From Perkinsus chesapeaki ATCC PRA-425 (lineage: Eukaryota; Protista; Perkinsozoa), in the NCBI GenBank assembly GCA_013115145.1, contig JAAPAO010000106.1, positions 11,998-75,997 on the forward strand: a DNA stretch of 64,000 bases, read 5' to 3'. The notes below the pieces were generated by a model. It made no database searches. It saw only the letters and a program-made list of their open reading frames with translations, and had not been told where the DNA came from. Of this stretch, positions 11,521 through 58,301 are shown in pieces. The first letter of the stretch is position 1. Each line of letters opens with the position of its first letter. A program made the translations under genes and the position numbers.

Positions 11521-14077
11521 TCAATAGAAGTCGACATTCGCAGGGCCTTCGCAAGAGATGGCAAAGACTTCTGTACTCTGACATAAAACAAGGATCGTTG
11601 AAATGTTAGTGTCATCATCTAACCTTCTCAATCGTTCCTGTCTGTGGAACTTATCTACACTATAACCAGCTGGACCCGGTGAATCCTCCACTGGTGGTAT
11701 GAAGGAAGGCTCTCTACCATTCTTTACATAATCTCTAACACTAACCATTTAATCAACTTACAATCTGCTGACTCACCTGACAATCCGAGTACCATGATCT
11801 AATTGCAATGACGACGTCTTCGATGCGATGTCGTAACTGTTGATGATGAATCCAATCTTTCTCTCTTGCATATCTCTTACGTTCCAGGGCCTGGCGCAAA
11901 CTTCCGTGCAGCTTGTTCTTGGTCCAAATAAGTAGTCTTAGACCCTTTACCCATCGACACCTAGCGACCCATAAAAGCACTAGAGTGGTAAATTATGCAA
12001 CTTTACTTTGACATCATCCCACAGGCCAGATCCAGAGGGAAGGACTTTAGGATCATACGCTCCCGGTGGTGGTATCGATTTAGCCTTCATCAATTCAAAG
12101 TCTGTAGCTCCTGGTATTAAAAGCTTAGGCTTAGATCGTGCTATTTTAGGGGCTGGGTTCTCATTGATACCTACACAAAAGAACACATGTTTGGGGAAAA
12201 TACGGTATGAAAATCTTACTATTCATGTGATGACTATAATCGGCCGGGCCAGGCATTATCTGCCTTATATTCATAGGCTTCCCTTTAACACATTCCTGTT
12301 GCTGGAGAAGCATCTAAATAAAATACCCTACCCGGGGTTCGAACCAGGACCGCTTGCACCTTTCGTTGTGCCATAACCAGATCCTTGGTGGATAACATCG
12401 TTGCTATCTTCTCCTCTTTATCATCTATCTGTTTACCAATCAGATCCCTTCGGTATCGATCCACTCGTTGAACTAAAACGCACCAGGAGGTCCCAGGTTC
12501 GAACCCCGGTGACGGTATCTTACGTTCTTCTCTCTTTTCCTTAGCATCAATAATCTTAAAATGAGCTATCTTATGCTTCAAAGAACTATAGGAGTTCATA
12601 GCCTCATCACTTAAACAGTATATAACTCACTGGTGCGCTAATTCTGCCTCCTTTTTCTTTTCTACGGTATATACTTTATTATCAAACTTTTGCAGTATCA
12701 TTTGACCCTGTAGTGCCCTCTCAACCTCCAGCTCGGCAATCTTGTTGCTCATTGCAATCCTGAACCATCAACAAGATACTTCTTGAAGCTGTATTGTTTA
12801 AAAATCGACAGAAATGTATTCTTTACATTTTCCGAATAATCGTATGGAAAATAGGTTTGTGAGAACGCGCGTGTTGGTAGGGTCATCTGATGATGATGCC
12901 CCGCCTGATCGCCTACCGTTTCTTCTCCCATTCCTCGCTCTTCTCCGAACTTGTAATATTTTGCTGCATCTGCCACTCCTTCAATCTTTGTTCTTCCAGC
13001 AACTGATGTGCTGTGACATCAGCCTGTCGTGCCATATAATCCTATTATTATTAATACCATACAGTAGTAAAATATCTCTTTAAGTAGCCTACCGCTTCTA
13101 GTGCATCTAATCTACTTCGATTCTCCTCCATCTTATTATCAGTAACCTCCTTAACTTGCTGTCCTTTAGCCTCTACTTGTTTCTGCGCTACAGCGACCCT
13201 CTCCCTTCGATACCTACAACCAGCGATGCCTTTATATCACTTTTCAAGAGGACAAATAACAACAGCAAGATAGAAGAGTTCAAACTTATCACAAAGTGAA
13301 GTTGTTCAAGTAACGTTCACCGACCTCATAAAGTCACCATCGGAATCGCCGAAAAGTTCGCGCTGCTGAAAAATGACTCACAAAAGGACATTGTGAGACT
13401 ATATAATTCCATACCACACTTTCTCCTAATCATCACTAACTTACTTCTCTCTCAATTGCAATTGCCCTTCCCTTTCAATCTGCTCTCTATTCTCCCTCTC
13501 AACCGATATATGATACCTGTTCATAATATCCTAACAGTAGACATCATCAACGCCACCTACCTGGCCTGATTCTTAAGGTCCTTCTCTAACTTCGCAGCTT
13601 CTTTAGCAATCAGGCTCTCAATCATTTGTAGATTCTGCATTCCCTTACTCGCATGCGCCGAACTCGCTATTGGTGACTGCTCCCTCATTATTGCCTAAAC
13701 CAACCAGTTGAGCAAATAACTCCTCAATCTCCCTACCGCTCTCTCGGCAAGAACTCGACTAATTCTTCCTTGCCTCTTAGTTTCATAATGATTAAACCGC
13801 AATCGCTGAAGCTCAATAGAGTCTCCGGGAATGTAGAATCTAACTAGTGTATCCCATCCATCCACATTTTCATGTTTACTCTTGAAACTGTCGAGCCTTG
13901 AGATTGTCTGGACTCACGCCGGTGCGCTTCAGGGCCTCTTGTGTACCTATCCACCGTGAAGTAAAAAGGGTTTATCCTACTACACAATGTATGATTACGT
14001 GGTGTGATGGGTAGATCTTGTAGTGCATCGTTTGCTCCATCATCATCCCCTTCATCCTCTCGATGTCGTTTAGTCAT
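11521..14077 (-). CDS. Coiled-coil protein with C-terminal PGPxxY (SHIPPO/ODF3-like) repeats
   Basis: In-frame spliced model from MTKRHREDEG...ITPR|TQEALKRTGVSPDNLKARQFQE|FYIPGDSIELQRLRFNHYETKR through a K/E/R coiled coil to PGPADY, PPPGAY and SPGPAGY repeats. Confidence 0.65.
12324..12353 (-). pseudogene. tRNA-like 3' half in a 46-nt intron (12314-12359), sense to host
   Basis: Minus strand GCGGTCCTGG TTCGAAC CCCGG GTAGGGTA followed by TTTTATTTAG. Splicing restores the host frame (...AQRK|MLLQQQ...). Confidence 0.8.
12486..12517 (+). pseudogene. tRNA-like 3' half in a 51-nt intron (12473-12523), antisense to host
   Basis: GGAGGTC CCAGG TTCGAAC CCCGG TGACGGT A. Phase-1 splice restores EEL|QRVDRY. 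Confidence 0.8.
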
Positions 14078-14236
14078 TTCTCTGATATTCGCGCTTTCGT
14101 GTGACAATACCCTTTTATGACAAACACAACAACTGACAGGAAAATAAGAAAAATCAAACCACAAAAAATGTACTTCGCAAAAATAAGGAATTATCTCAAT
14201 AATTAGTAACCAAGATAACACTTGAATTCATTATTA

Positions 14237-16342: not shown

Positions 16343-16426
16343 AAAACAATCTATAATACTATATTATTATAAATAACACAACAGCAAGATTTTACTATAA
16401 TAATTAACCATGACGTCATCTATTTT

Positions 16427-23696: not shown

Positions 23697-24907
23697 TTAT
23701 GCTTCCATACAGGATGCTATCGCGTCAACCATTTTAGGGAGATCATCTTCATCGAGGAAATTATGATGTGCCTCGATGGTGCGAACTTGACCATGACCTT
23801 CCGGCATCTGATCCATGAACAACTTTTGTACTTTTTCTCTCAATTGCGGGTTAGTGTATTTATCAATAGTAGGATGTATAATAAATGCTCCTTGAAGCTT
23901 TACTAAGGGCTCAACGCTTGGCTCAATAGGCATATCTTTCAGCTCCCATGCTAGCATTCTTTCAATATTACGCAGGAATTTACCGTGGCAGATCTCCCTA
24001 CCAGCATCACGCATTGGAACGGATGAGGGAACGAGGGCAAGAATACCACTTAGTATGGGACGGAACCATGACAGAACGGACAAGGTGGGACGGGTACCAT
24101 AGCGAAGGCGATTGTAGTTTGAGAATCTACAAATTGTCGGAGCAAGTAGACCAACTTCGAACTTAACCGTGGGGAAATTGTGACGTATCTTACCGATAAA
24201 ATTAAGCAATATAAAAGCACCGATAGAATGACCTAGTAACAGAACTCTTTCATGTTTGGTTGGGTCAATTCTTCTAGACAACAGACGAACATGATGATCG
24301 ACTTGCTGCTGTAGAGTGTCGAAAACCCTCTCACTTGTCTGGGAGTGACCGGCATGACCTTCCACCAGGACTTCTGCCCCAGGGAACTTGCCTACCAATA
24401 GCATGGCGAACTCGCGATATAAAGATACGACCGCTGGATTACCCGGAATAACAACAATCAATAAACCAGTATAAGGAGCTTCCTTGGACTTATGCATATC
24501 TTTATCGGCTAACCAAAAAGAGTCAGAATTCACGTGACTAGTGACACGCCGTCGGACCAAATGACGAACCTTGCCCTTGGTGATACCATTACCCTTCTGA
24601 ACCTTGGTACAGGACTCAACAGACAGATCAGAGGCAGTTGTCGTAGCAGCAGATGAAGTATCACTTCTACGACTCTTAACGGTAGCCGTCATCATAAAGG
24701 GAACTAAGAATAGCTGAAAGAGGAACACTACAACCCACCACTGAGTGTTTGTCCGAGCGGTTAAGGGGTCAGGCTCAACATCCTACGGGCAGCGCTCGCG
24801 TAGGTTCGATCCTCGCAGGACTTATATACCGCAGAAGAACTCAAAGACTTGTAGAGGGTTGAAGAATGGATAACATTTAATAAAGTTGCCAATAAAAAGT
24901 CAAACAT
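23697..24907 (-). CDS. Lipid-droplet-associated alpha/beta hydrolase (LDAH/DUF2305-like); exon 1 24830-24907, exon 2 23697-24713
   Basis: IPGNPAVVSLYREF and GHSIG nucleophile motifs. A phase-0 intron joins MFDFLLATLLNVIHSSTLYKSLSSSA to LFLVPFMM. Confidence 0.8.
24743..24824 (+). pseudogene. Full-length decayed tRNA-Leu(CAA)-like sequence filling the first LDAH intron, antisense to host
   Basis: GAGTGTT TG TCCG AGCGGTTA AGGG G TCAGG CT CAA CA TCCTA, long variable arm, then GTAGG TTCGAT CCTCG CAGGACTT A. Class II layout; anticodon and T stems are mismatched. Confidence 0.75.
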
Positions 24908-25147: not shown

Positions 25148-27020
25148 TCATCCGAGCTCGACGACGACGACACTCTGCCCTACCTTCCCCATATCTCGTG
25201 TTATATTCTTTTGATGAGCTTCTAATGTACCTCCACCTATCTCCAATAACTTGGCATCCCGCCATAGTCTTTCAACTACATATTCCCCAACATAACCGTA
25301 TCCACCGAGACACTAATAATCATCAACACTCTCCATGTCACCTCCTTCACCCTCACCTGTATAGCTCTATCAGCTACATCCTTCGCCATACTTGTTGCAA
25401 ATAGTTTCACGCCATCTGAATCCGATCTCGACCCACTAGCTGTATCCAACCTCAACTGCCCAGCAACAGCATACCTAACCCATCCAACCTAAACCGCCTA
25501 GAACCCCCGAAACCCCTACACATATGCCCGCGCTGCTGCCCACTGGGCGTAGGAGTCTGCAAAATGCCTTTGAATTTGGCCAAAGTCTGCCAAGGGCTTT
25601 CCAAAGGACTTTCTTTCATGTGCGTAGGCCAACATAGCATCCAGACACCTTTATAAATAAGCTCTACCACCTCCATTGCTAGTAGGCAAAACTACTACCT
25701 GCGCGCTATACCCAAACTCATAGCCGCCAAGGTAACTCTTTCAATCTCTAAATTACGCATCATTGGCACCAATCCTTTACCTGATAAGACCAACTTAGCA
25801 ATCTAATCACCACTAACGATGCCACCTAAATCACCGACAAGATTCTCTTTGGGAATCTTAACTCCATCAAAAACAAGCTCAGCAGTGCTAGATGCTCTCA
25901 TACCGCACTTATCAGTGATTTTCTGCCCCACTTTAAATCCTACAACACAACGATCATACAAACACTCTGACAATCTAACCTTCCATCCCCTTCTCCACTA
26001 TGAACAATGACAGCCCTTCTGGCGCCTTGGCATATACCTACCCAGGATGCATGCTGTTAATCACTTAATTGTTATCTTCACTAAACAACAGTCACCAAGT
26101 TGAACCCCTTCCGCTTCGGTATCAATACACCCATTTGTTATCCACATTTTGCTACCATTTAACCTTATAAAAATACCCCATGCGAGGATCGAACCAGGGA
26201 CCTTTCGAATACCAACCTCCATCCATCCCCATCTGGAGTAGCCTTCGTCGTCATTGCCATAACATCCGTACCGCATCCTGGCTCACTCATGCCCATACTG
26301 CCAATAATTTTCCCAGATATAGCCGACGGCAGTAGCCTACAGAGCCTGCCTCCATTCATAGTTATATCACCTTTACCTTTCTTTTTGCTCCTCTGATCCG
26401 TTGTGATATAAATTATTAACAAACAGCATAGAGTGTGCCAGATAGCTCAAGCATAAGCCTGGATCAGAATACGACAGCTCCTGACAATACCGTCAATTGG
26501 TTCGTATACGTGCTCCTCGCCAGAATACTGTCCTCCTAACCTCGGCTCCAACTCAGTCTACAATCCCTTTTCTCTCTCTTCTATATAAAATTAACTCTTC
26601 ACCACCCGGAAAATTATCCGAAATTTTCCCAGTGACTTTGAAATTATTAACCCTACTACTTCATGCGCTATAACAGCAGCAACAGCATCCATACCACTAC
26701 CACCGTACTCCTCCGATACACAGATGCCATATAAACCTATGATAAGGGAATCATCTGACAGCTTGCGTCAGATAAGCGTCCCTCTCGTACCGAGATCTCC
26801 TAGCTCTCTAAGTAGAGGTAAGTTACACTTCTCCAGGCGATCGTGATGAAGAGCTTGTGGTTCAACCTAGGGAAATATAGCTCCCCAAAATATAGGGAAA
26901 TATCACTTTATTAGCCACGAAGGATCTTAACATATTTCTCAAAGCACTGTGGTCTGAGGTAGGTGTAAGGAGCTTATGTAGCAGCCCAGAGGTGGTGGTA
27001 CGGACTACTTTTGATGACAT
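25148..27020 (-). CDS. IVD: Isovaleryl-CoA dehydrogenase-like acyl-CoA dehydrogenase, multi-exon
   Basis: GSMGMSEPGCGTDVMAMTTKA, LNGSKMWITNG and the C-terminal KLLEIGGGTLEAHQKNITRD. Confidence 0.85.
26174..26207 (-). pseudogene. tRNA-like 3' half in a 53-nt IVD intron (26164-26216), sense to host
   Basis: CGAAAGGTC CCTGG TTCGATC CTCGC ATGGGGT A followed by TTTTATAAG. Splicing gives the conserved GDGWR|LNGSKMWITNG. Confidence 0.85.
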
Positions 27021-27099: not shown

Positions 27100-29301
27100 T
27101 GTGACCGTTAACCATGACCATCGTGCCCATCCTTCATCCACTTCTACTGCCTTGTCTCTGCTCTGTCTACCCTCCCTATCATCCATCTCAGGTAGCAAAG
27201 AGCCCCAGGAACTGCCTATCTAGACTGGTACTAAATGGCACCTGTATATCCTGTCCATCCTGCCCCCTAACTGTTGTCGATGTTGACCATTGCATAACTT
27301 GACCACCATTAGCACTACAACTAACCGGTCTAGTGCCCCCACCACCATTCCCTCTCGTACTCCCCCTACACCTGGTCTGTGGTCTACCATCTGTCACCTA
27401 TATCACGAAAATATACTATCCCCTGCCATTCCAGTCATTACATCACTCCTAGCCTGCCTTCCTGACCTACTCCTAGTCCCTCTACTACCAGTACTGGTAT
27501 CTGGTCTACTTTGTTGTTGGATATCATTTATCTATAATAAGCACGATAACATTCATCACTGCTCCTCCTCTACCTACCGCAGCTCTATCAGCCGATGGTA
27601 TCCTAGTCTGCCTCCTCCTATTCGCTGTCGACATCACAGGCGGCGGCCTCTGTTGGCTTGATCCATCCTACAACCAACCGTCATCCACTCCTTCAATCAC
27701 ATACCAACCTGTTCCCGTCTAGATGATGACCGTCCTTGAGTTGATCGATTCGATAATCTCAAGGGTATTGTCAACGGTTCTACACCGTTACGAGTTGTTA
27801 CTGATAATGGTACCGTCTCCCCGCAAGAAGAGGATGAAGCTGATGGCGGAGAGAACTCGTTCTCCTGATAATTAAAGATAAAAATACCCCTACCAGGGAT
27901 CGAACTCACGTCAGCACAGAAGTTAGGGGGCGGTATTTCCTCCCCTCCTCCCTGACCATGCTGCCAAGGGAACTGATCCCAATGTGAGCTATAGTCCCCT
28001 TCAGTGGATGATGATAACGGTTGCTGCTGTCTTAAACCATTCTCATCTGGTTCCTCCACCAATAGACCTACAACAGATAATACTCAACCACTACGGGTGG
28101 CCTTAACCTAATACTATTGGTTGGTTTCACTGCATTAGTCGGCTGTGACCTCCTATTACTTTGTTGCTGCCCTCCTCCTCCTCCAGTATCTACTACTTCA
28201 TTATCCCCCTTATCGCCCTCTATAGGACCTACCTCTTTGGCTCCTAGATCTCCTATTCCAACTAGAAGGCCGCTTTACAGTAGATGTAGTGGTAGAGGTA
28301 AAGTCTTCGATTAAAATACCATCATCATCACCCTCATCATCAGATATGTACGCACCAACGGTACTACTACCATCATCACCTATCCAACATGAATCTCCAT
28401 CAACCCTCTGCACCTCCCTACCTCCACCATGTGCTCTAACCTGCTGCTCCCCACCCGGCCGGCATCTTCTCGACCTTGGTGCTGCCCACGAGCCCTAAGA
28501 TACTTCATCACAATAAGTAATAAATGTATTATTACCCCTGTAACCATTTGACCATTGATATGTGCCAATAGTGCAGGATTGCTCCTCCTTGCCGAGCCCC
28601 CTCTCCTACTAGGTGGTCTCTTGGCTAGGGTAGCGACCGATTCTGTTGTCAATGGTCCCGGCTTCCTTTCCCTTTCAAATGCATCAGTAACCCTTTGTAT
28701 GGTAAATAACTGAGGTAATACTATCCCACTTTGCCCTATATATTCTCCTACCCCAGCAGCTGTACCATTTTTTCTCGACGGCGGTCTCTTCACCGGTCTC
28801 TTATCTATATCATCATCCACCACCACCGAAGAAGCATCGTCAGCATTATCATTAATTCCTTTACAACTACTAGATGCTATTAATAGACCACCCATACCCC
28901 ATTCGTTATTCGAGTGATGATGACGACCTGCATTTATTAATTATTCTGACACCTCTAGCTGTCCTCCTTACCACCATCCTTCTTTAATTGTTGCATTGAC
29001 CTTAACATTTGAGCCCCTTGTTGTGCTACTAAATTAGCCCTATCAATAACCCCATTAGCTCCACCATCCTTGGCCATAGTTCCTTTACGAGCCATCTTAA
29101 CAGGCTTTGCCATATTACCACCAGCACTCCCCCTGGAGGCAGGTGGCCTACAGGAAGTACCTAAGTCAACCTAAAGATACGCCTCCTGTTTAGGGTAATA
29201 CCCTGCCCTCCTCTAGTGCTGGTTTGCCTGGTCTCTGGTGATGATGTAGCTGGACGACGATACTGTCGAAGATCGTTGCTAATAGGTGATATAGTAGGCA
29301 T
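27100..29301 (-). CDS. Low-complexity hypothetical protein with recurring (K)RPPSR motifs, multi-exon; 3' end approximate
   Basis: Spliced frame MPTISPISNDLRQYRRP...GGQG|TSCRPPASRGSAGGNMAKPVK, with further open exons at 28380-28895, 27697-28062 and 27188-27397. Confidence 0.5.
27885..27909 (-). pseudogene. tRNA-like T-arm and 3' end in a 45-nt predicted intron (27865-27909), sense to host
   Basis: GTGAG TTCGATC CCTGG TAGGGGT A TTTTT...CAG. The intron is a multiple of 3 and has no stop codon. Confidence 0.7.
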
Positions 29302-39600: not shown

Positions 39601-41178
39601 TCATGACGCAGCTGCTCCGCTTTCTTGGTCCAATATAGGAGCGTACAGGGTTAATCTCCTACGACTCCGCCACGCCTCCACAGCTGATACCGCTCTCTTC
39701 CCCAAGCCTCTAAAACTTAACAATATGACCATGGTAACATAAGTACAGCATAGGATAGGCAGTAGGTCCCCTATTATAGTATATATAGTCCCAGAGCCAC
39801 CAAGCTGTACTTCACCAACTAGAGCATTTTCAAGGGCCTCTGTGCTTTGGAAATGTGCCACTACCTTCCCTTTGCCGTCTACTATGGCCGAGTCCCATGC
39901 CCCGTCTGCTTTAACAATTGGTATATTATTCTCGATCGCTCTAAGAACACTCACACCATAATGATTACGCATGGCACTCCAGTCATTCGACGGATTTAGT
40001 ATAATCGATGCCCCCAGAGCAGCGAGTTCTCTAGCTGTAGCAGTAAAGTCCATATCGTAACAGATAAGAGTTCCGGCTTTTCCTATAGTGCCAGACACAG
40101 GGACATCTGAAGTGATAGAGCCCATAGATGAGGGCAGATGAAATAGAGGATAACCGTATTTAGCAGAGCTCTTCTCTCCTGCAACCCAGAAAGGATACTG
40201 CTTACCATAAACACTAATAACTTGACCTTCGTTATTTATAGTGATAGCTAGATTTTGTTGAGGGTAAACAGTAGCTCCTAATGTTAGGAAAATACCTAAT
40301 CGTTCAACCACAGGAGATATCTGTTTGTCTATATAAAGATGGAGACTAGATTGATCAGAGAAGCCACTAAGCCATGCCTCGGGCCATACTACTATCTTGG
40401 CTCTACCATCTCCAGCGGCCCATTCGGTCAGGTTTAGCATGCGCTCCACGCTACCGTTGCAGGGCAGGCGACCACCCACATGGATGATCTCCGATCGGCC
40501 TCCACAAGCGTTAGGTAGGAGAGCTCCAGGTGTGATAGTGGCAACTGTGATGGCTTCTCGACCGACGTTATGGTCTACTGAGAATAATAATATGCTTACC
40601 ACAACCCAGACGGTAAGGTCAAACGCTGCCCTAGTTATGTACTTGTAATTTTTAGATGATACAAATGACGCTATAGAAGCGTTGGTGTACATTACCATGA
40701 GCTCAAGGCCAAAGACACCGAAGATTGATATTGGCTGGAGTAAAGCAGGCGCTACATATAGAGGAGTGCACAGGAGCTCGAAAGTACCCAAAGGGCCACT
40801 GAGGCCATACCACATAGCTGTCCACAGAATAGAGCAACGGAGAGGCTCTGATTTGGTATTAGGTTGAGCGAAGACCAGCTTATCTATTATCACTAATATA
40901 GACCATAAACCTGCTATAACTATTCCAAGACATAGACCTATTAAAAGAGGGAAGCCTTGGATTGAGCATCTTATCATAGCTGTTACCGGAAAAACTATAA
41001 GTACTGTTATAGGGGCCTTGTCTTGAGCAACAAGTAGGGGTACTAGAGCTATAAAGCACAAAGGCCAGAGCTCAATTATAGTACTAGTAGTCGGTAAATG
41101 GACAGATCTACAGTTATCTAATATAGCAGTCGACAATCCTAATAGTAACAATCTCCATGGTGGGAATTGAAGCCTCAT
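39601..41178 (-). CDS. lnt: Apolipoprotein N-acyltransferase (Lnt)-like membrane nitrilase-family enzyme, intronless
   Basis: N-terminal multi-TM region, then a CN-hydrolase domain with an E-K-C triad (IVVWPEA, YGKQYP, LICYD), SNDW, LRAIENNIPIVKADGAW and a C-terminal TIYTIIGD plus TM segment. Confidence 0.8.
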   Translation of the reverse strand: MRLQFPPWRLLLLGLSTAILDNCRSVHLPTTSTIIELWPLCFIALVPLLVAQDKAPITVLIVFPVTAMIRCSIQGFPLLIGLCLGIVIAGLWSILVIIDKLVFAQPNTKSEPLRCSILWTAMWYGLSGPLGTFELLCTPLYVAPALLQPISIFGVFGLELMVMYTNASIASFVSSKNYKYITRAAFDLTVWVVVSILLFSVDHNVGREAITVATITPGALLPNACGGRSEIIHVGGRLPCNGSVERMLNLTEWAAGDGRAKIVVWPEAWLSGFSDQSSLHLYIDKQISPVVERLGIFLTLGATVYPQQNLAITINNEGQVISVYGKQYPFWVAGEKSSAKYGYPLFHLPSSMGSITSDVPVSGTIGKAGTLICYDMDFTATARELAALGASIILNPSNDWSAMRNHYGVSVLRAIENNIPIVKADGAWDSAIVDGKGKVVAHFQSTEALENALVGEVQLGGSGTIYTIIGDLLPILCCTYVTMVILLSFRGLGKRAVSAVEAWRSRRRLTLYAPILDQESGAAAS

Positions 41179-41274: not shown

Positions 41275-41346
41275 TGTCCAGCCCGAGATTCGAACTCGGA
41301 GCCTAGGGCACGAAAGTCGGCCGCTCTACCGCTACGCCAAACCGAC
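41275..41346 (-). pseudogene. 72-nt tRNA-like pseudogene (nominal TTC anticodon) upstream of lnt
   Basis: GTCGGTT TG GCGT AGCGGTA GAGC G GCCGA CTTTCGT GCCCT AGGCT CCGAG TTCGAAT CTCGG GCTGGAC A. Canonical spacing, A and B boxes and a perfect T-arm, but the anticodon stem is largely unpaired. Confidence 0.75.
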
Positions 41347-41784
41347 GGAAATTCCGAAACTTATTTTTTCGGAGGCCGTTTGTTAGCCCACTTTCGAATT
41401 CAATAACTTGCATGATTCAAGAGAATGTGTTCCACATAGAGATGCCCATATAGTCATCTGGTTATACTCAAAAGGAGACGATATGAGAAGGTGAGACGAA
41501 GCCAAGACATGAATAGCCAAAAAATTGACACCCGCGGCCGTACTACTTGATAAATTAGGGCTGCCGGGGGTGTCAAATTCTGAGTCAACATTTTTGACCG
41601 TCAAAAATGTTGACTCAAAATTTGATTTATTGGTTGCAAGTTTCATCCCGGGCAATTAGTTGATGACTTTAGTGTGATAGTGGAGGATACCCCATATAGA
41701 AGGAATTGGTATTAATAGAGTACGCACGATACTCAAGATACTGCATGTTCATTATTTTTCGGAGTGCATTTTTAACACAATTCC

Positions 41785-45406: not shown

Positions 45407-45471
45407 TATATGTTGGAATCTCAGTCTAAGTCTTAGCGATTTAATACTGTCGGTGTTCTATAGATAATATA

Positions 45472-46830
45472 ATGTCAGCAGGTGGAGGCTCATGTGCTGC
45501 AACAATAGCATCATTGAGCGACTTTCCTCCAGAACTGAAGATTAATGGGAAAGAAGAGCTACTACCGAGACCACAGGCATATCAGGACACTGCGTGGATG
45601 AAGTTCGCCGCCAGTAAGGGTTCACGAGCAACATTATTTATTATTATATTTAGATAACGATCAAGAGCAAGATAAGACAGAACGTGTACCCAGGGTAAGA
45701 GGAGTTACTTTTTTAGTGGCTGTCGTCGCGGAGCGTAGCAAAATGCTGCTATTACTTGTTGTTCATGCGTGCGTCTGTAATCGGCCTTCCGTAGCTTTAA
45801 GTTAAAGGTACGGAAGGTCATTAATCGTCACGCCTTGAGCCTCTAAGTATAGGGATACTAGGAATGATAGGAGAACCCCGGTAACATTAGATCCTACTAG
45901 TTTGCGAGTGAAAACGTTTTTTTCTTGCCAAAATGATGGGCATGGGATTCGAACCCGCGACCGCCTTGCGTTTCGTATCGAACTGCAAAGCATCCAGAAT
46001 TTCACCGCGAACGCTCGGGCGGTTTTTGTATATTATTAACTCGTCGTAATTAGAACCGGAACCCCGGGACAAAATATGATATTTTTCCATTATTTTTTCA
46101 ACTCGGCGCCGAGTTTGAGAATCAGTTGCATTTTATTAATTGTAATGTAATTATTCCGTAAAGTGGTTCACGTGAAGTAGATCAAGATTCGCTTTTAATT
46201 TGTCATAGGCGGTCCCACCTCAGGTGAGTGGCCGGCCCTCCAGTGACAGTAGCGGTAAACATCCACCCAGTAGTAAGTCTCCGTTGACTTTCTGTTATCA
46301 AGATCTATAAGTCCGATATTATATTAATTATACTATATTGAACATACCGGTTCATCGGCGACTTTCATTTTCATATCATATTTCCGAATGAAGGCGTTAG
46401 AGTACTATCTCGTCTTATCAACTCTCTCGATCCGAAATACGCTAGATCTACATCAAAACTGTCTCTTCCTGCTGCATGCCGGCCCATCTGTCCCCTTCTA
46501 GGGCCAACTGCATCTCGACGGAGCAGTTCTCAGATGACGCCGATCCGCTGCCAAGAACCACTGTTCACGGTGGGGAAATTTGGCATGACAGGCTGGATGG
46601 TATTGTTATTATTAGGATGATGATGATGAGATGACAGACTTTGTGGTGCCTCAGTTGGATGAAGAGTTAGATGATGATGGTGAGTGGACAGCTGGGGGCA
46701 ATCTATCTTCGTAGAAGTATCTTACCTGTACGAAACTAACGCGGTGAAGATATAAAGCAAACTCTTTGCCTGGACCGGAAGGATTCATCAAATACTGGGA
46801 CTAACATTTCTCAACGGAGACAGTTACGGT
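45472..46830 (+). CDS. Hypothetical gene(s); exon structure beyond about 45700 uncertain
   Basis: MSAGGGSCAATIAS...AASK|DNDQEQDKTERVPR| plus further open, splice-bounded segments. Confidence 0.35.
45934..45997 (-). pseudogene. Decayed tRNA-like element; intronic or intergenic status unclear
   Basis: ...GGCGGTC GCGGG TTCGAAT CCCAT GCCCCATC A followed by TTTT. Confidence 0.7.
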
Positions 46831-47045: not shown

Positions 47046-48860
47046 ATGAATTTTTCGACTGATATTATGTTGACAGATGCCTCCTCCTCTTCATCGTGTG
47101 GAGGCGTGAATCAGACTAGCGACTCTGAAGAGGATGATGAAGATTATGAACCAACAGCTCCTGTGAGAGATAGCTCATCATCATCGGAAGGGAGCAGTGC
47201 GGAGGATAGTGTTAATCATCAAAATACGCCAGTAAGCTTGACCAAAATATTACTCGATCATGCGGTGGCTACGTGGTGGAAGGAATACCCGAAAGTCGTT
47301 TTGATTTAGCATTTCAAATGACAACCTTTGAAAGTCCACATCACACCTTCCGCAGTTTCGGACTCATGTCGAAGCGTTCTAACGCAGCTTTGCACATGCG
47401 TGCAGCTCCTCGAGAGATAATAATATACAGATCGTAAACGAGGGAAAGTGTATTGCGGTGAGGGCTTAGGGTGAGAATAGAAGGCGGACCCGGGGATCGA
47501 ACCCGCGACCACGGTGACGAAGACTCACAACGTATTAGTGTATCCTACTTCAGTTAACGAGATCCGAAAAACGTCGGCGGAAGGCCGGGTATAAAAAACA
47601 AACATCACCACCGAAACGGAGGGGTAGGGGGTTCACCTTACCACGGTATCATTCAAGTGCTAGGTCATGACGCGCCCCGGCCACGGCTATCCCTGGTGGA
47701 CCAGGGGATCATCATTGATAGTTTCAACACTGAGCTTGGGGACATCTACGCTGTGGAGGTCAAACCAGCGGCAAAAACTCCCCGCTATATCAGGTGGTTT
47801 GATCGGAAATCATCGGATCCGGACTTGGCCGGACCGGCGATTGCTGAGATGAAGAGAGTGAGGAGAACGTTCCAGAATTGCGCTCATTTTTCTCCAGGCT
47901 GAGATGCCATTGCACCGGAAGATATTTTTCCTGCTCGAACAGAGGCTTCCTGATAGAGAGCTTCCCCAGGCACCTTTGGACTTGCTGGCGGCAGCGTTCG
48001 GACGGGCGAAGCTCGGCGACTTGGAGGTAGGGATGGTGGTTTGTTATTATCAATCATGATTCAGAGTGATGCTGTCATTGCTTGGATCGCAACACAGGAC
48101 CCAGCTAAGATGACTCACCGCGTTTGTGCCGCGGCAGTGATCGGTTGCGGTGGACGGCGGAGCCCCGGACACTCGCCGAACTTCATCATCCGGCTTTTCA
48201 CAACATCTCGGGATGTGTCCTTCGGACGAAGAAAAGTGAGTGGCAGGCTGTTGCATGTGTTGGTCAATTGAAACTTGTAAAATCGAGCCAGCGGCGAATT
48301 ATGTAAGTAACTTCGGACGTATTTTGTGGCGCGTGACGCTTGAGGTTGGTGTATGATAATGATGGTACTGCTAGGAAATCCTCAGTGTCATTGGCGCAAT
48401 GGTTAAAATGGATGTCACTTATCAGATGATTCAATAGTAAAGAAACTCAGCTACGTAATACTTCCTTTGTTTAATACAACTTTACTGGGTTCCAGACAAG
48501 CTCCTAGGATTTGCCTTCGCATGATGAAGGACATATTTCATCTGATCAGGTTAGAGTCCGCGGCAATGGTTGGGGAAAGCTCCTACTACAGGAGATAGAG
48601 CACCATCTAGTGGCAGCTCGTAACTGCCCATACCTCCTAGTTGAGAGCGTTGCCGAAGCCTGGGGGTGTGTAACCCATCTGTCCTCCACCTTCAGATGAG
48701 TCAGGTTCTGGTCGCACCTCGGTTTCGAACTGAAGAGCTCCAGAACCACGGCGACATCCTCGAGCGACACAGAGGGGTGCGAGTTTGATACCATGCGGAT
48801 AGGTGTCTACGCCCAGACTCTCATCGGCGCCAAGCCAGTCAGATCGTTTCGACGGGTATG
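47046..48860 (+). CDS. Multi-exon protein with a C-terminal GNAT acetyltransferase-like domain
   Basis: VRGNGWGKLLLQEIEHHL (acetyl-CoA-binding motif A) and LLVESVAEAWG...FWSHLGF. Acidic, S-rich N-terminus. Confidence 0.6.
47482..47530 (-). pseudogene. tRNA-like 3' portion in an 81-nt intron (47458-47538), antisense to host
   Basis: GTTGTGAGTCTTCGTCACCGTGGTC GCGGG TTCGATC CCCGG GTCCGCCT. Phase-0 splice gives KCIA|CILLQLTRSEK. Confidence 0.75.
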
Positions 48861-49022: not shown

Positions 49023-50308
49023 ATGACTAATTCAAGCGGTGCTGCTCTATTGAACCTTCTGAATGGCGGGGTATCATCCTCATCGACTAACAAACCGACA
49101 GATGATGGTGAGATCGCTAACCACCATTGCAGTGTAATAGTTCGTGTCAGGTAAGCATCTTTTGGCCCTTCTTAAAGGTGGTGGCTGCTCTAAAACCGCC
49201 TGGGAGCAGGCCTCGGCAACAACGACATCATCTTCGTCCGAGTCTACTATGTCCCCAATTCTGGACAAGTTGTTTAATAACACCACCCACGAAGAGTAAG
49301 CTTTTCTAGGTTCAATCTTTAAATAATTCTCTTTAGTGAACATGACTGCAGCTACAAACGGTTCCTGTGTTGGTATTGGGAGCATGATCTACCATGCGTC
49401 CACGGCGACAGCTGCAGATTCGCTCATGGCTTCGGTGATATGGGACCAAGTCAAGTTGATGGTGCGTTGGTGACAATAGACGGCTCTGACTTCCCCGCGA
49501 GAACCATGATTAAGTAAAAGAGCGGTATGAGATTCCAAGCAGTCGTGTGATAGGTTCCCTTTGCCGGGCTGTGATGTTCGCTATCAAAGCGGGGTCTTTT
49601 CTAAAGAGGAAAGCGAGCTATTTCTGTCAATGTTAATAAGTGAAAAGTATGTATCCTGGAATAGGGTCGGATATGGCAGAGATGTGGTGCAGTTCTCCAG
49701 TCCAAAGGGGATGAAGTAATATAATAATATAAAAAGTTATTCTGACACCTCTAGCTGTTAATAGGTATAGTTTCTCTGATGAGGATTATATAGCAGATGC
49801 GTTCCCGCCATTTGTTCTTGGAATAATGCATCGGGTGAAGAGTATTATAGAGTAACTCCAAATCCATCTCCACCTTATCTTAGCCTGTCCAATTTAGGCC
49901 AATATATGGTGAAGATAAAGTACAGTTCAATTACTGCGTGGCTAATGTTTATCGGTCCGGTAAAGCAGGTAAGTTAGATGGTATCAGTCTTTCTCAAAAA
50001 GCTCTTTGTAGGCGTTACCTATCACAGCGATAATGAACCGGAGCTTCGGCCAGACTGCCCGATTGCTTGTGTCAGTTTCGGAGCGGAAAGGATATTTTCA
50101 TTGAAGGCGATGGGAGCAAAGTAATATGGTTGGAAGTATGGGTGGCTTTGAAAGGAGCGGTAGGTCGGAGACAGCATATCATGTCCGCCTGGAGGATGGA
50201 AGCGTTGTGATTATGGCTGGTGATACGCAGAAGAATTATCTTCATCAAATCACCAAGGAGGATCATATCTCTTCACACTATCCGAGGGTGTCGCTGACAT
50301 TTAGGTAG
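49023..50308 (+). CDS. CCCH zinc finger plus AlkB-family (ALKBH2/3-like) 2OG-Fe(II) dioxygenase, multi-exon
   Basis: YKRFLCWYWEHDLPCVHGDSCRFAHG (C-x8-C-x5-C-x3-H) spliced in frame to FNYCVANVY, YHSDNEPEL, IACVSFGAERIF, YLHQI and RVSLTFR. Confidence 0.8.
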
Positions 50309-50399
50309 TAATAAGGCGGTGATTCAGCTTTGGAGGGTCGGGGGGGGGGCTAGTTTGTTCGGATAGGCGACAGTTGTGTGAATTGATAGAGCAGAATCG

Positions 50400-51900
50400 G
50401 ATCAACTATACGGTTTGGTAGAATAATAGGAGTAATACTAGATATATTATAAAGCCATACAGTAGTACTGAGCTGAGTAATAATGTATAGTGTTGCTGAA
50501 GAATCGGATGAATCGGTGATGGATTTGGCGTGTTCTGAAAAGTATACATTCCTCTTAATTTCACGGCTTCGTGTCGAAACCCTCCTTATTTATTCCATCT
50601 TTGCATTTTTTTCGAATTTGCCTAGTTGGGAATGTTATCTACTATAACTATTATTAATTAACATCATTAATGATCATAATATATTGTTTACTACTGATAA
50701 AGCTATTATATTAATAATGCATACCACTGGGGTCATTTTAATAACTTGTCTCGAGTACAAGACGGTGAAGTAGAGAGGTTTTGAGTGATTGATAGTAGAG
50801 GAGGATTGTTGTTGTTGATATAATAATATGCTTATTTAGGGTACATCACACGGGAAAGAAGGATAAGCTATGATGTAGCTACTGGTCAATAGCCTTCTCG
50901 ATTGGAATTGTTGTTGCATTAATATTACCACAGTTGTGTGGTTGTTGGCTTGCTTTATTTACGAATGACACATTTTTGTTGAAGTCGAAGTAATAGGGAG
51001 GATAGCACGCAAAAGACCGATGTTGAGTTATAGTTTTCACGTGGGTTCGATCCGCAGCAGGGGCATTTTTAAAATGTACAGGCCTAAAGGACGTGTTATG
51101 ATGACTAAGGTGACGGGGCCTCGGGAAGATAATGCTGCTGATGGTGGAGGGTCATCATCACCACCTGGGAAGGGTAAAGGAAATAATAGGGAGGGCAAGA
51201 CAGCAGAGAGAAAGGAGGACTTGATGGTAGTATGGGAAGGGGGAGAGAGAAGTCCATGACCGGTGGTTATGGTGCTGACTGAATTCATACATTCAAGTAG
51301 GGTGGCATGGGATGATATAACAATATAAAAGCCACGACAAGGATTGGTCTCTTTTCAATTGAATGGAATCGAATCGTTTACATCCTTACTATTATTTTTA
51401 TACTTTCAAAATAATAGAACTGGAACTAGTTGTTATTCATAACCAGCAACAAGTAAGTGATTGGAAGCGATATAACTGATTAGGCAGATAGAGTCTATTA
51501 GGTGTTGTTTCATAGGCTTATACGGATTTGTTACTCATTGTGTGATGATCGAAAAACTAAAGGTATAGTGGTATACTATAGAAGTGTTGATGAGATACGA
51601 GAAGGTGAATGTTGAATAGATTGTTGCCGTTGGTAGGCAGTTGAATAAACGTTGTTATAGTCTTCATCTAGAATAGGTTTGATAGCTTTTAAAAGAATAG
51701 TGGAGTGGCACCTATAAATTGATAAAATGATAAGGGGTATTGGTATGTTTTTATGATACCATGTAGGTTAATAAAGAAAGCACGCCACCACCTGGAAAGG
51801 GTAATAGAAGGGGAGGAGGTAAAGGAAGGAAAGGAAATGATTACGATAATAATAGTAGCAAGCCACGTGGAGGAAAAGGGTAATAAAGGCTGAGGGGCGG
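50400..51900 (+). CDS. Hypothetical multi-exon gene with G/K/R-rich PPGKG segments
   Basis: Open exons PKGRVMMTKVTGPREDNAAD...PPGKGKG and VNKESTPPPGKGNRRGGGKG. Model incomplete. Confidence 0.3.
51040..51065 (+). pseudogene. tRNA-like T-arm and 3' end in an intron ending at 51081 (donor at 50990 or 51041)
   Basis: GTGGG TTCGATC CGCAG CAGGGGC A TTTTT AAAATGTACAG. Confidence 0.65.
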
Positions 51901-52169: not shown

Positions 52170-53725
52170 ATTTTATCAGAGTCAATGATGGTAGTCGGTC
52201 TAAGAGCAGCACACCAGAGAAGGTAAAGGAGCAAGCTGCTGAGGATCAGGGCCCACCTGGCAGCTCGTAGGGTTCAGTGCTTTGTAGGGGTAAGGATTTA
52301 CTGTTTTAGGCGAAAAGTGGTGATACGATTACTCCCGCCAAGTATAACAGAGGAGCAGCTGTGGAAGGCTATACCTGAGGCGGTGAAGGAGAGTGTGGTC
52401 GGAAGGTGATAGGAGGGAGTGCCGACTGGTGCAGCAGCTTGAGGGTCGAAGTGATTATAACTGTGCAACTGTTGAGGCGCTGATTCCGAGTTGTCGGTCC
52501 ATTTTTGTAAGGTATGGAACTGCGAGAATATAGTTTTAAGGAATATGCTATTATATATAATTAAAAGGTTTTATATGGAATTTGGTATGATAGCGGTATG
52601 GGAGAAATTGGTCAAAGGATCTTCTGGAGGACAATTTAATAGTATTAAGCTATTGGCTGGCGAACTGCAATAAAAAGGGGACAATGATTGTGTTAAATTA
52701 AGAGAGTGATTATGCATGGTTTAGGTACTTCGTCGGAGGGTCGCAGCCCAAACGCCCCAGTATAACCTGCCCTGCGGTGAACAGCCGATGCTATCTTGAA
52801 TTTGAGACCAAGCAGAAAGCCTTCGACTTCGTTAATGCTTTTCACGGACATAAATTCGTGGACCATGTAATAAGATGGTGATGATAGAGATGATGGTTGA
52901 GTGTTAGTCTGGGGAGACTTACCGAGCAGTGGTGTGCGCGTCGCCGTGGGGGAGGTGTTTGCCTAGTAGCAGCGGTAGACGGTCAAGGCATAACAGGGAT
53001 ATTAAGGAAGGTTCAATAGATAAGTGCAAGTAGGAGGGAAAGGGAGAGGGCGGAGGTTCGAATCCCGGTTAAGGTACTTTAAGGACTTTATTTCCTCTAT
53101 AAAGGAAGAGTCCCAAGTTGCCGCGTTACCGGAGCCAACAGAAGGTAACAGCTTTTGGATGGGTTCTGGGTGATGATTGTCAGTTACGTGTGATCCGGGG
53201 AAGACGCCTTTGGTGGATTATATTAATGAATGGTATAAAGATAAGGAAAGGAAAAAGGAGAAGGAAAGAAGGCGTCAAAGGGAAGCAGCTGAGGAGGCAC
53301 GAAAGAAGAAAAAACAAACAACTGAGAAGTATTTAGTGGATGCATCGCTCCGCTGTTACTGGTGTTATTTTTTTGCAGGGAGGGTGGTAAAAATGGTGAA
53401 AGTGGGAAGGATGGGAAAAGGAAAAAAGGAGGTCATCATCATCATAATGGCGGCGGCGGGGGAAGCAAGGATGATGGTAAGCAACGTCGAAGGACGTTCT
53501 AGTTGGGAATTTTCTCAGTTTTTTCCGTGAGCTGTAACTCGACGAGTGGCTAAACGCGGGAATTTCACTTCAGATTTTGTTGGTTTTTTGGTGGAAAAAG
53601 CGACGGCAATTTTATGAAAAAATTGATCGAAGGTGATTATTTACTGCTGTTTAGATTGGTGGTATGACCAGAGCTGGTATGGCTACCGAGGAGGGTACCG
53701 GGGAGGGAGAGGAGGAGGAGGATGG
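52170..53725 (+). CDS. UPF3: Nonsense-mediated decay factor UPF3, multi-exon; ends approximate (alternative stop at 53502)
   Basis: RKVVIRLLPPSITEEQL, SRCYLEF...AFDFVNAFHGHKFVD...GETYRAVV, EGSIDKCK|YFKDFI and KTPLVDYI. Confidence 0.88.
53046..53076 (+). pseudogene. tRNA-like 3' half straddling the acceptor of a 44-nt UPF3 intron (53030-53073)
   Basis: GAGGGCGGAGG TTCGAAT CCCGG TTAAG|GT A CTTT. Confidence 0.7.
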
Positions 53726-53993
53726 TGATGAGCGATAATGGTAAATTGATTATATCAAAAGGGTAGGTGATCGATATAGCGAGGTCATCGATTAGCATCC
53801 TTGTCAGGTGTTGGTAAGGTCCTTCGTAGAGAGTAGGTATTGAAGGAGGCTTCGGAGGTGGATAATCATCGTCTCCGAGTGATGGTCTTCCCAATGATCG
53901 TAACGTGCTCAATACTGTATCATTTTATATTGCAATTGGTGTTGAGTTTCACTAGTTGTCCGAAACAAGGTCAGAATGAACATGACGGCACGA

Positions 53994-55147: not shown

Positions 55148-55175
55148 GCCGGTTGAGAAGGAGCTGAACACAGAC

Positions 55176-55210
55176 TGCCTACCCCGAGGTTCGAGCAGGA
55201 TCCGCCTGCC
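55176..55210 (-). pseudogene. Decayed tRNA-like 3' half between tatD and the dehydrogenase gene
   Basis: GGCAGGCGGATCCTG CTCGAAC CTCGG GGTAGGC A, which aligns with the 12324-12353 element. Confidence 0.6.
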
Positions 55211-55368
55211 GAAGTTGCCAATAATCTATCATTGTCAATGAAAAAGTGAAGTGTTGAGTCACCAGTAGTGGGCGAGTGACACTACAGATCGATTGTGCAA
55301 CGTTCTGTCTCCCCCTAGCCATTTTGTAGGAGTAATTATTATTAGACTTTCAAGTGTTTTTTATCATC

Positions 55369-56379: not shown

Positions 56380-56488
56380 AGTGGCGGTGCCGTTGGTTTC
56401 AACTAAATGTACTTTTGTTGAACTCTACATTATTATTAATAATGATTGTAGAAATGTTAATAATATAACGACACAGCTTCAATAGGCA

Positions 56489-58301
56489 TCACCGAGGCAA
56501 AGGGAATTTACGGTTCAAATAACTGATACAGTAGCCTTTGATTCTCTTCATTGCTGAGTCCTTCAAACCATCACTTGACAGATTGAATCGAACTGTGGAG
56601 TCCAACCTAACACCGCCTGTTCATCGGAATGTCTCGAGCTCGATTCTCACCTCAACTCCTTCTCCATAAGGGTTTGTGAGATCGCCTTCGCCACCTTCCT
56701 CCATTCGGGAGCTTCATCTGCGTCATGATCACACATTTCCGGGTTTGACCTGCCCACCCTGGTTCGAACCCCACCGGCGGCATTTTTACCTTCTAATGTG
56801 CAATTGTGTCAATTTGTAGACCTCATCTTTAAGGAACTTATCGAAGACCTTATATTCCTGCGTATGATGGTAGCTCTTCAATAATGAGTTCCGATCGCTT
56901 CCACTTCGCTTCTGTGATCGATACTCCCGCACACTTCTCATCTTCTTAACCGGTGAGGCGTCAGATGTCCCACTGGTGTCGGCCGAATGTGACCTATCAA
57001 AATGTGTGTTTTCAACACTTCAATCAACTCTTACCTTTTCCTATCAGAATCTTCATGCCATCCTCTCCCATCCTCATCATCATCATGTCGACTTAACGAT
57101 CTTCGCCTTCCCCTACTCGACGCGTCATCGTTACCGTCGGTCGAGGGAGGCGTCTGTGGTGGTGGTGGTGGAGGGGGAGCTTGCTGAGTCGGTGGCTGAC
57201 TTGACCAAGCAGACGAACTCCAGCTTGTCGGTACTGGAGGAGTAACTGCCAATAAAATAGTTGATCGAGTGTTGCCATTCACTTACTTGTTCCCATCTTA
57301 GCCGGTGCTGGAGGAGGCGGAGGCGGCGGTTGGGTGGTTGCTCCTGCCACTCGGTATGGCTCGGAAGGCTCTGCTGGCCCTGCTGTTAATGTTGCTGGTG
57401 GAGACATCAGATCCACAACTGGTCCCGCGGGACTCGAAACTGCTCCAGACAACCGCCCTAGTATCTTTCGACAGGCTTCTGATTCCATATCGACCTGAGG
57501 ATGTCGTCATTCCGACCTTATTGGAATCTTTCTTCTCACATCGGGATTATCGGCGACCTTTTTAACGTTCTGCATTGCATCCAAAGCTTGAGTTACCCTC
57601 TCCTGGTCGGCTGTTGTCCATTGCATCGATTTCTTCAATCTCAATGAAAGCACCAACTGCAAGGCCAGTAGGGCTCGCGATGTCACTGAGCCCGGCATGG
57701 TATCGGCTAAAGAGATTATCTGACAAAAAGAGAATCTTTAGGTTATCCAAGAACGATACAAAGTAGGTCAGATTGAGGTCTTACATAAAGCAACGCATCC
57801 AAGCCCGAACCAGTTCCCTCGAATGCCTCCAACACCCCAGAAGTCTCCTGTGACATTAACAGCACATCCAGGTATCTGTGAACCAGTCCTCTTAGCGGAA
57901 GCTGGCAAGCTTTAGATTTACGCTGTAGTAGCCTTTCCACCAGGATCAGTTGATTTGGATGCCGACCGCAAGAATGACGCCAAATGAGCTGCATGTGAGA
58001 CCTAATAAAACACCTCTGCCAGGGATCGAACCCACGACCTCTTCTATCAATGACCCACCTCCGTCAAGGTTGCCGTCCTTTGATTAATGAATGGTATAAG
58101 TTTCGGCACGGTATTCGCCCTCCTCAGTATCGCATCTCGAGGCCTTGAATGAACCAGCGGCGTCCGTCCCGTTTTGTCTATAACATGATCTCCGCGATGA
58201 TCTTTTTTTTTCGCACTAGTACCGGCAACCAGCTCCCTCAAAAACTGGAACTCTGCATCCTTGGACCGACCTCGAAGAGTAGGTGAAGTTATGGCGGCCA
58301 T
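56489..58301 (-). CDS. Hypothetical nuclear protein with a C-terminal SRI (Set2-Rpb1-interacting)-like domain, multi-exon
   Basis: Spliced C-terminus EVYKLTQLHIRR|SNP...EWRKVAKAISQTLMEKELR|...MKRIKGYCISYLNRKF resembles SRI. Pro-rich linker; no SET motifs seen. Confidence 0.55.
56756..56782 (+). pseudogene. tRNA-like 3' half in a 40-nt intron (56750-56789), antisense to host
   Basis: CCCTGG TTCGAAC CCCAC CGGCGGC A TTTTT AC. The reverse complement of TTTTTAC is the GTAAAAA donor. Confidence 0.8.
58011..58042 (-). pseudogene. tRNA-like 3' half in a 57-nt intron (58002-58058), sense to host
   Basis: AGAGGTC GTGGG TTCGATC CCTGG CAGAGGT G TTTTATTAG. Phase-0 splice gives TLTE|VSHAAHL. Confidence 0.8.

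Follow-up and report, generated by a model that had tools for sequence, protein, structure and literature searches.

What are the remnants of tRNA 3' ends that recur in the short introns of unrelated Perkinsus chesapeaki genes, and did they make these introns or were they kept in them? The question is raised by a 64,000-nt window, i.e. the whole stretch of DNA analysed, from the genome of this relative of the oyster parasite, in which a preliminary description had listed ten GT-AG introns bearing such elements. Introns of P. chesapeaki are short (median about 48 nt) and occupy ~14% of the window, an estimate for which alone the 141 introns of an ab initio gene finder were used, a program that matched ~60% of RNA-verified junctions exactly. 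A tRNA-tail relic makes up most of about one in 15 short introns, and several more relics lie directly 5' of genes. The window was compared with P. marinus and with P. olseni; exon identity between the species is only 66-83%, and that to P. olseni is given as 70-80%.

Anatomy and number of the elements

The elements satisfy the T-loop/B-box consensus GGTTCRANNCC of tRNA gene relics. The B-box motif GGTTCGAWYC has 13 strand matches at 10 places in the window vs 0.30 expected, a count equalled by none of 100 shuffles, and GTTCGAWYC has 19 matches vs 1.47 expected. Twelve elements align in a single register consisting of tRNA positions 44-51, the B box (positions 52-62), positions 63-65, a 7-nt acceptor strand, the discriminator and a trailer; the discriminator (position 73) is A in 10 of them, and the trailer from position 74 is T-rich in most, while CCA is present in none. 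The 5' half of the tRNA is gone in 10 of the 12, a 3' bias also seen in the absence of A-box enrichment (1-2 pattern matches in the window vs 1.8 expected). Just 2-4 of the 5 T-stem pairs are retained, and no functional tRNA gene was found in the window by ARAGORN or at the Rfam gathering threshold, the top scores being 21.4 and 13.0 bits vs gathering 29.

Outside the B box the elements are 34-45% identical to one another, their acceptor strands are all different and several tRNA isotypes are represented, in agreement with the earlier statement that they do not form a single young SINE or introner family. The reported orientations (six sense, four antisense) were also confirmed; three elements read alike both ways because GGTTCGAACC is palindromic. 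Eight of the 12 elements are intronic (p = 3.5e-5 against the intron share of the window, 2.5e-3 with non-coding DNA alone as background), corresponding to ~1 element per kb of intron and ~9x the density in other non-coding DNA, so that an enrichment in introns, put forward at the outset as a check, is indeed found.

Descent from a mobile tRNA-derived element such as a SINE, a MITE or an introner-like transposon, the B box being its Pol III promoter and the copies decayed insertions, is improbable. P. olseni does contain a dispersed repeat of >150 nt with a B box, two copies of which, ~76% alike, occupy large introns, and the corresponding introns of P. chesapeaki are without it. However, this repeat is missing from the window, the window elements diverge from one another as described, and neither TSD nor TIR accompanies them; moreover, a promoter would be needed in master copies alone and would not stay conserved at old orthologous insertions, and one relic is orthologous to an ordinary intact tRNA gene (see below). 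Dada transposons target Perkinsus tRNA genes (PMC3706591); as a source of the elements they were rejected, since the 40-57-nt introns show nothing like a transposon end.

Elements in coding-region introns

The elements in introns of coding regions are the following, the decayed relic at 56607-56650 being additional to the eight counted above.

12314..12359, minus strand: 46-nt intron of a KH/RRM/zf-CCCH gene; sense relic, tRNA positions 44-73 at 12324-12353
12473..12523, minus strand: 51-nt intron, KH/RRM/zf-CCCH gene; antisense relic, tRNA strand plus, 12488-12517
26164..26216, minus strand: 53-nt intron; sense relic 26174-26203; RNA junction
27865..27909, minus strand: probable 45-nt intron; sense relic; donor GT 3 nt before the B-box core
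47458..47538, plus strand: candidate 81-nt intron; antisense relic 47482-47511
53030..53073, plus strand: 44-nt intron of a UPF3-like gene; sense relic 53047-53076
56607..56650, minus strand: 44-nt intron; decayed antisense relic (GAATCGAGCTC)
56750..56789, minus strand: 40-nt intron; antisense relic 56753-56782; frame restored
58002..58058, minus strand: 57-nt intron, same gene as 56750..56789; sense relic 58011-58040

Splicing is supported by RNA for one element intron and by restoration of the reading frame together with the P. olseni position for five. The 53 nt of 26164-26216 are skipped in RNA contigs of runs X1 and X2, and this relic recurs in the orthologous intron of P. marinus, where it is best conserved 5' of the B box. 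Only two small RNA runs contain the P. chesapeaki genome; they yielded 13 junctions in two stretches, with no junction at 45.5-48.9 kb and with sampled words of 52.5-58.5 kb absent from both runs. Among the element introns these two runs gave an RNA junction for 26164-26216 only.

Among the five introns supported by frame and position, 12314-12359 joins 89 + 50 codons and has a B-box-bearing counterpart in P. olseni (L005/L006), while 12473-12523 and 58002-58058 each share a 12-nt block with the P. olseni intron at the same position (GGGGTTCGAACC and GGGTTCGATCCC, respectively). At 53030-53073 the acceptor AG consists of tRNA positions 69-70 and the exon opens with positions 71-73 and the T-run, a layout that P. 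olseni repeats with an intact T arm. The intron 56750-56789 also lies at the same position in P. olseni, there ~185 nt long and without a B box. The reverse is seen at 56607-56650, where the B box has decayed in P. chesapeaki and the P. olseni orthologue retains GGGGATCGAACTC.

Two further introns are plausible only: 27865-27909 is compatible with the frame, yet the frame is also open if the segment is retained, and it has neither RNA cover nor an orthologue that could be found; at 47458-47538 the open frame is merely 25 + 43 codons within a weak gene model of poor coding signal and without RNA. A Pfam search with the host exons, which are short or unconserved, gave no match, and a P. olseni match (L008) to an aspartyl-protease query was dropped as being without synteny.

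Elements upstream of genes and the tRNA-Leu case

Four elements lie outside coding introns.

24743..24824, plus strand: near full-length pseudo-tRNA-Leu, antisense, directly upstream of an LDAH-like start codon
41276..41346, minus strand: full-length pseudo-tRNA-Lys(UUU)-like element, ~95 nt upstream of an Lnt-like ATG on the same strand
45934..45963, minus strand: tRNA 3' relic in non-coding DNA, with no convincing gene model and no RNA
51036..51065, plus strand: sense relic in the ~150-nt spacer between an ALKBH-like and a UPF3-like gene, ending 8 nt before the ATG at 51074

Two of the ten introns originally listed had to be given up as coding introns. The segment 24714-24829 was rejected on the basis of a closed upstream frame and a conserved downstream start in P. 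marinus, and could at most be an outron or an intron of the 5' UTR; 50990-51081 was rejected because P. olseni lacks its acceptor AG and the first codon of the conserved start MYRPKGRV is at 51074. Both lie upstream of conserved starts, and relics evidently mislead gene prediction, two of the ten earlier intron models being wrong. RNA of the ALKBH-like gene extends to at least 50921. The P. olseni site corresponding to 51036-51065 holds a near full-length tRNA-Glu-like relic of which P. chesapeaki retains only the 3' part, and the B box of this site, at 51044, has one base changed in P. olseni.

The pseudo-tRNA-Leu scores 13.0 bits with the Rfam tRNA model and has 8 broken pairs, whereas its P. 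marinus orthologue (L009 9843-9924; 76% identity over 87 nt) is an intact tRNA-Leu(UAA) of 59.9 bits; one nested tRNA gene is thus still intact in P. marinus and dead at the same spot in P. chesapeaki. Orthology to an intact tRNA gene is demonstrated for this single element, and the intact gene, together with the T-run that stands in place of CCA, upholds the view that tRNA genes rather than mature tRNAs were the source. The pseudo-tRNA-Lys scores 21.4 bits and is found by ARAGORN solely at the 80% threshold.

Age of the elements and the origin of the introns

One of two alternatives in the preliminary description was that tRNA pieces are a repeated source of new introns. According to such a scheme tRNA genes with their terminators would have been inserted into exons, a sense trailer providing the pyrimidine tract and AG and an antisense one the GTAAAA donor, and the relics would be the founders of the introns that now hold them. 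Several features have the expected appearance. In each of the eight coding-region introns a splice site is 5-20 nt away from the tRNA 3' end, the tRNA end and T-run continue into the exon at 53030-53073 in both species, and in a P. olseni intron (L001, ~12849) as in that at 27865 of the window the donor GT is in or beside the B box, leaving T-stem bases exonic. The distances given earlier also fit (AG at 9, 10, 10 and 20 nt; GT at 5, 6, 7 and 11 nt), but as a rule they are barely beyond chance in introns of 40-57 nt. In addition, the tRNA end already adjoins the donor where the intact P. marinus tRNA-Leu lies beside the LDAH gene, and minimal introns together with the ~50 nt upstream Pol III promoter could explain this layout.

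The species comparison bears directly on the point. P. olseni shares four of the intron elements and one spacer element, and P. marinus shares one element, all at identical positions; all comparable introns occur at the same P. olseni position, and among them no element-bearing intron was gained or lost between P. chesapeaki and P. olseni. Since the 56750-56789 intron is element-free in P. olseni and several P. olseni introns carry elements missing from their P. chesapeaki counterparts, elements apparently come and go in standing introns. Repeats at the boundaries of element introns are as in ordinary introns, i.e. there is no TSD signature. The recent making of introns is therefore not borne out; on these comparisons the elements are old and not new intron makers, and creation of introns by tRNA pieces, which we judge unlikely overall, is unproven, although the founding of element introns in a deeper ancestor may have taken place. 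The intact P. marinus tRNA-Leu and its P. chesapeaki wreck point to the decay in place of nested tRNA genes.

Conservation of the B box

The other alternative offered at the outset, that the pieces are selectively kept, fits the data in that conservation of the B box greatly exceeds the neutral level. The impression from a single genome that the B box is more durable than the other parts is to some extent circular because the elements were found by their B box; the cross-species test alone escapes this circularity, and it rests on six orthologous pairs. Over these pairs 95% of the bases agree at positions 52-58 and 83% at 61-62, compared with 27% for positions 36-43 and 50% for 66-72 (Fisher p = 6e-9), positions neighbouring the B box generally being 27-67% identical. 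In the pairs that were chosen from P. chesapeaki, P. olseni has the same base at 34 of 35 core positions, giving p < 1e-6 even at 60% neutral identity. The longest interspecies block shared by element introns is always the B box, whereas ordinary orthologous introns share blocks of 5-7 nt only, as in the shuffled null. The exceptions to retention are the decayed 56607-56650, the one base at the 51044 site and the absent B box of the P. olseni 56750-56789 orthologue; these, and the P. marinus copy in the 26164 intron with its best conservation 5' of the B box, count against selection on the B box.

A function in the RNA, as a T-arm-like piece of pre-mRNA that is read by a tRNA-binding enzyme or aids the splicing of tiny introns, might be suggested by the position of the sense T-run at the place of the pyrimidine tract and by the GGTTCGAACC palindrome, which renders three elements orientation-neutral. 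However, antisense elements without the palindrome would read GGAUCGAACC, 12 of the 13 RNA-verified introns are spliced without such an element, the T stems have lost pairs, and folding of element introns does not exceed that of shuffled sequences (mean z -0.3 vs 0.0 for ordinary introns), making this the kind of explanation to which very little weight can be given. From conservation in both orientations, the broken T stems and the lack of a fold excess, the B box is probably kept at the DNA rather than the RNA level.

Persistence of the B box with no function at all, by repeated gene conversion from live tRNA genes or by a locally low mutation rate, has a small probability as well. The B box is the portion common to all possible conversion donors, but conversion should also mend the pairing of the T stem and the acceptor strand, both of which have decayed and differ between species, and a conversion tract of ~11 nt is implausible. 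That the B box has stayed almost constant between species amid decayed surroundings suggests that it is probably still bound by something.

A proposed history of the elements

The reading that best accommodates these observations, to which we assign a probability of roughly 0.6 on comparative sequence evidence, is that the elements are relics of tRNA genes in which selection maintains the B box, probably as a TFIIIC (ETC-like) site. In this reading the relics descend from tRNA genes of several isotypes, ordinary Pol III genes that lay in either orientation in short introns and short 5' flanks of Pol II genes. Upon death of such a gene, pressure to keep introns small (median about 48 nt) would delete most of it, and the surviving part would consist of the B-box stretch, the acceptor strand and the oligo-T terminator, the latter by the 3' splice site when sense, or as its complement at a GTAAAA-type donor when antisense. 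Nested genes would have decayed in place with the B box kept, and the tRNA pieces therefore would occupy old introns. Between species the B box (52-62) is nearly unchanged while T stem and acceptor strand decay, a retention that is predicted to reflect continued TFIIIC binding with no tRNA output; the outcome would be intragenic "extra TFIIIC"-like sites acting on DNA or chromatin. A point against this reading is the poor conservation, among protists, of the TFIIIC subunit that binds the B box.

Should the B boxes be bound, ordinary Perkinsus genes would contain selected isolated TFIIIC sites at high density, each traceable to a dead tRNA gene, and would offer a natural gradation, running from nested genes still alive to relics of minimal size, in which the influence of Pol III factors on Pol II genes and chromatin could be studied in a lineage near the dinoflagellates. 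For intron evolution, much of the content of tiny introns would be given an identifiable origin, and the question is raised whether tRNA genes seed introns. A bolder and distinctly doubtful extension is that dead tRNA genes form dense intragenic TFIIIC landing sites in introns and outrons with the terminator co-opted as a splice signal, some introns having been founded by tRNA-gene insertion in a perkinsid ancestor; if true, the architecture and splicing of Pol II genes would be tied to promoter elements of Pol III.

Comparison with known systems

A literature search found no earlier description of intronic tRNA relics in Perkinsus and no paper joining Perkinsus and TFIIIC. tRNA genes nested in introns of protein-coding genes are known in nematodes and mammals. 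These are alike in placing a Pol III gene within a Pol II unit in either orientation, of which the P. marinus tRNA-Leu beside LDAH is an example; because Perkinsus introns are only ~45 nt, a tRNA or its relic fills the greater part of an intron and adjoins its splice sites, and, unlike nested genes elsewhere, most of the Perkinsus copies are dead. tRNA-derived SINEs likewise disperse tRNA-like sequence and a Pol III B box in genes, but SINEs retain the 5' portion of the tRNA, including both the A and the B box, and have a body and a tail besides, whereas the Perkinsus elements keep the 3' part and their own terminator and stem from many isotypes.

Introners (PMC9860276, PMC12130899) are similar in that a recognisable kind of sequence recurs in the short introns of many unrelated genes; the Perkinsus elements differ in having no near-identical family, TSD, TIR or interspecies presence/absence, and their role in intron creation is unproven. 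Perkinsus and tRNA are not mentioned in the account of introners in PMC9860276.

A further likeness is to the ETC sites of yeasts and mammals (e.g. PMC3395662), where a lone B-box consensus with no working tRNA gene is conserved between species and is presumed to act at the DNA level independently of orientation. The Perkinsus elements similarly carry a B box with neither a usable A box nor a tRNA, and this B box is conserved between species. The candidate Perkinsus sites differ from ETC sites in being visibly derived from tRNA genes and in lying mostly in tiny spliceosomal introns or before start codons.

Number and layout of the elements

The motif GGTTCGAWYC has 13 matches on the two strands of the window, i.e. 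10 places, where 0.30 are expected, a count reached by 0 of 100 shuffles. A-box patterns are not enriched in the window (1-2 matches vs. 1.8 expected), and no tRNA is found there by ARAGORN or by Rfam at the gathering score. Aligned on the tRNA-sense strand, twelve elements (decayed tRNA-gene 3' ends with a B box, numbered by tRNA position) share one common register.

Layout of the elements
Positions 44-51: often AGGTC
Positions 52-62: B box
Next: three bases
Next: 7-nt acceptor strand
Next: discriminator (A in 10 of 12)
Next: T-rich trailer

CCA follows the discriminator in none of the twelve. Their identity outside the B box is only 34-45%, and they are not one repeat family, as the preliminary description had held. 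A whole but broken cloverleaf is kept by only two elements, at 24743-24824 and 41276-41346, with Rfam tRNA scores of 13.0 and 21.4 bits respectively (gathering score 29).

Two near-perfect hairpins of ~25 bp (41572-41626 and 62388-62438), whose Rfam miRNA-family matches are far under the gathering score, may be transposon ends. A weak SNORD74-like match at 12852-12915 (+ strand; 21.7 bits, E = 2.4), within a predicted 157-nt intron and antisense to the host gene, is probably due to chance.

Introns carrying elements

Ten coding introns with elements had been proposed, and six of them are supported. In RNA contigs from two small runs 26164-26216 is seen spliced out, as are six ordinary introns around it; a second RNA-covered stretch gives six further junctions, all ordinary, and an element is present in one of the 13 RNA-verified introns. 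Splicing joins long open frames at 12314-12359, 12473-12523, 53030-53073, 56750-56789 and 58002-58058, and P. olseni has the same GT..AG intron with conserved exon flanks at all five. Candidate introns at 27865-27909 and 47458-47538 are plausible.

The remaining two are rejected as coding introns. For 50990-51081 the acceptor AG is missing in P. olseni, the protein start MYRPKGRV at an ATG (window 51074) is found in both species, and RNA of the upstream ALKBH-like gene extends to at least 50921; the 51044 element thus lies in the short spacer directly before the start codon. The ALKBH-like (2OG-Fe(II) oxygenase) gene has an RNA-verified 535-nt intron, 50305-50839, and adjoining introns of 40-49 nt. 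For 24714-24829 the upstream frame is closed in P. marinus and the conserved start is downstream, leaving at most a 5'-UTR intron or outron.

With an intron share of ~8.7 kb estimated from rough gene models, the 8 of 12 elements that are intronic make an excess (p = 3.5e-5 vs. the whole window, 2.5e-3 vs. non-coding DNA only), a density of ~1 per kb of intron vs. 0.1 per kb elsewhere. Three of the four non-intronic elements (24803, 41296, 51044 and 45955) precede a start codon by no more than 100 nt. An intronless carbon-nitrogen hydrolase (Lnt-like) gene of 525 aa at 39601-41178 (- strand) is surrounded by an intron-rich region; a full-length pseudo-tRNA precedes it by ~95 nt on that strand.

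Probable origin from nested tRNA genes

The P. marinus site orthologous to 24743-24824 is an intact tRNA-Leu(UAA) gene by ARAGORN and Rfam (59.9 bits, E = 4.6e-12).

L009:9843-9924 (P. marinus GG684313.1), antisense, intact tRNA-Leu(UAA) gene immediately before the LDAH-like coding start

There is a GT 5 nt past its tRNA 3' end, and ~20 nt ahead of the ATG a pyrimidine-rich AG. Over 87 nt it shares 76% identity with the P. chesapeaki copy, which has eight pairs broken and thus appears to be a nested tRNA gene that decayed in place rather than an inserted fragment. This comparison is the strongest single result of the analysis. Before the UPF3-like gene a near full-length tRNA-Glu-like relic is found in P. 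olseni and only the 3' part in P. chesapeaki. An intact tRNA-Arg(ACG) gene lies at the extreme contig start of a P. olseni locus (L005:49-122).

Age and turnover

The P. olseni loci are orthologous and syntenic with window 48.9-63.2 kb (L001) and 11.5-18.8 kb (L005/L006); the P. marinus loci compared are L004, L007 and L009. Aligned exons of the window and these loci are only 66-83% identical in nucleotides, so that neutral sites should be saturated. The window also encodes an aspartyl protease and a 3-hydroxyacyl-CoA dehydrogenase, one exon of which gives a 99% match to a P. chesapeaki protein. At positions comparable with P. olseni, both species have four intron elements whose B box is intact (12314, 12473, 53030 and 58002) and two more that are decayed in one of them (51044 in P. 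olseni and 56607-56650 in P. chesapeaki). One element, that of 56750-56789, occurs in P. chesapeaki alone, the P. olseni intron being ~185 nt and without a B box; four occur in P. olseni alone, two of them part of a dispersed repeat with a B box. The relic of the 26164 intron is also present in P. marinus. Among comparable positions no element-bearing intron was gained or lost between species, which speaks against the earlier proposal of a source of new introns; exon-intron boundary repeats are the same as in ordinary introns.

The dispersed repeat (>150 nt; two copies ~76% alike, L001:2616-2779 and L001:5069-5225), P. olseni-specific among the sequences compared, is possibly a tRNA-derived mobile element. 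Both copies lie in large P. olseni introns with P. chesapeaki counterparts that are tiny or lack the repeat. At many orthologous positions (window 11.5-16.3 and 51-58 kb vs. L005 and L001) P. olseni introns are 8-20 times as long as those of P. chesapeaki, e.g. 563 vs. 38 nt and 528 vs. 49 nt.

Conservation of the B box

Ordinary orthologous introns have common blocks of only 5-7 nt, not above shuffled controls. Among element introns common to both species, four in number, the B box is every time the longest such block (7, 12, 8 and 12 nt). Over six orthologous pairs, core and remaining positions differ in identity at p = 6e-9.

Identity by tRNA position, six orthologous pairs
36-43: 27%
44-51: 67%
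52-58: 95%
59-60: 58%
61-62: 83%
63-65: 67%
66-72: 50%

Only 2-4 of 5 T-stem pairs are kept, the element introns as RNA are no more stable than shuffles, and the B box is conserved in both element orientations, all of which points to a constraint on the DNA motif rather than on an RNA fold. Recent gene conversion from live tRNA genes could keep the B box as well, and is unlikely since it would restore the stems.

Comparison with ETC sites

The B box of tRNA genes is a high-affinity TFIIIC site. The "3' end" look of the elements calls for no particular mechanism: with 11 nt between the B box and the tRNA end, an intron of 45 nt that is centred close to the B box has to hold the acceptor strand and terminator, whose bases serve also as pyrimidine tract (sense) or GTAAAA-type donor (antisense). 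tRNA-derived bases extend across the splice site into the exon at three places, which could reflect intron sliding or ancient intron creation.

Splice-site crossings
53030 acceptor (P. chesapeaki and P. olseni)
P. olseni L001 ~12849 donor
Window 27865 donor

Literature searches found no publication describing the phenomenon. Lone B boxes that are conserved go by the name of ETC (extra TFIIIC) sites (PMC3395662), and with the B box a TFIIIC site we infer that the elements are probably ETC-like sites left by dead nested tRNA genes, alike in a B box that stands alone and is conserved, where TFIIIC would bind.
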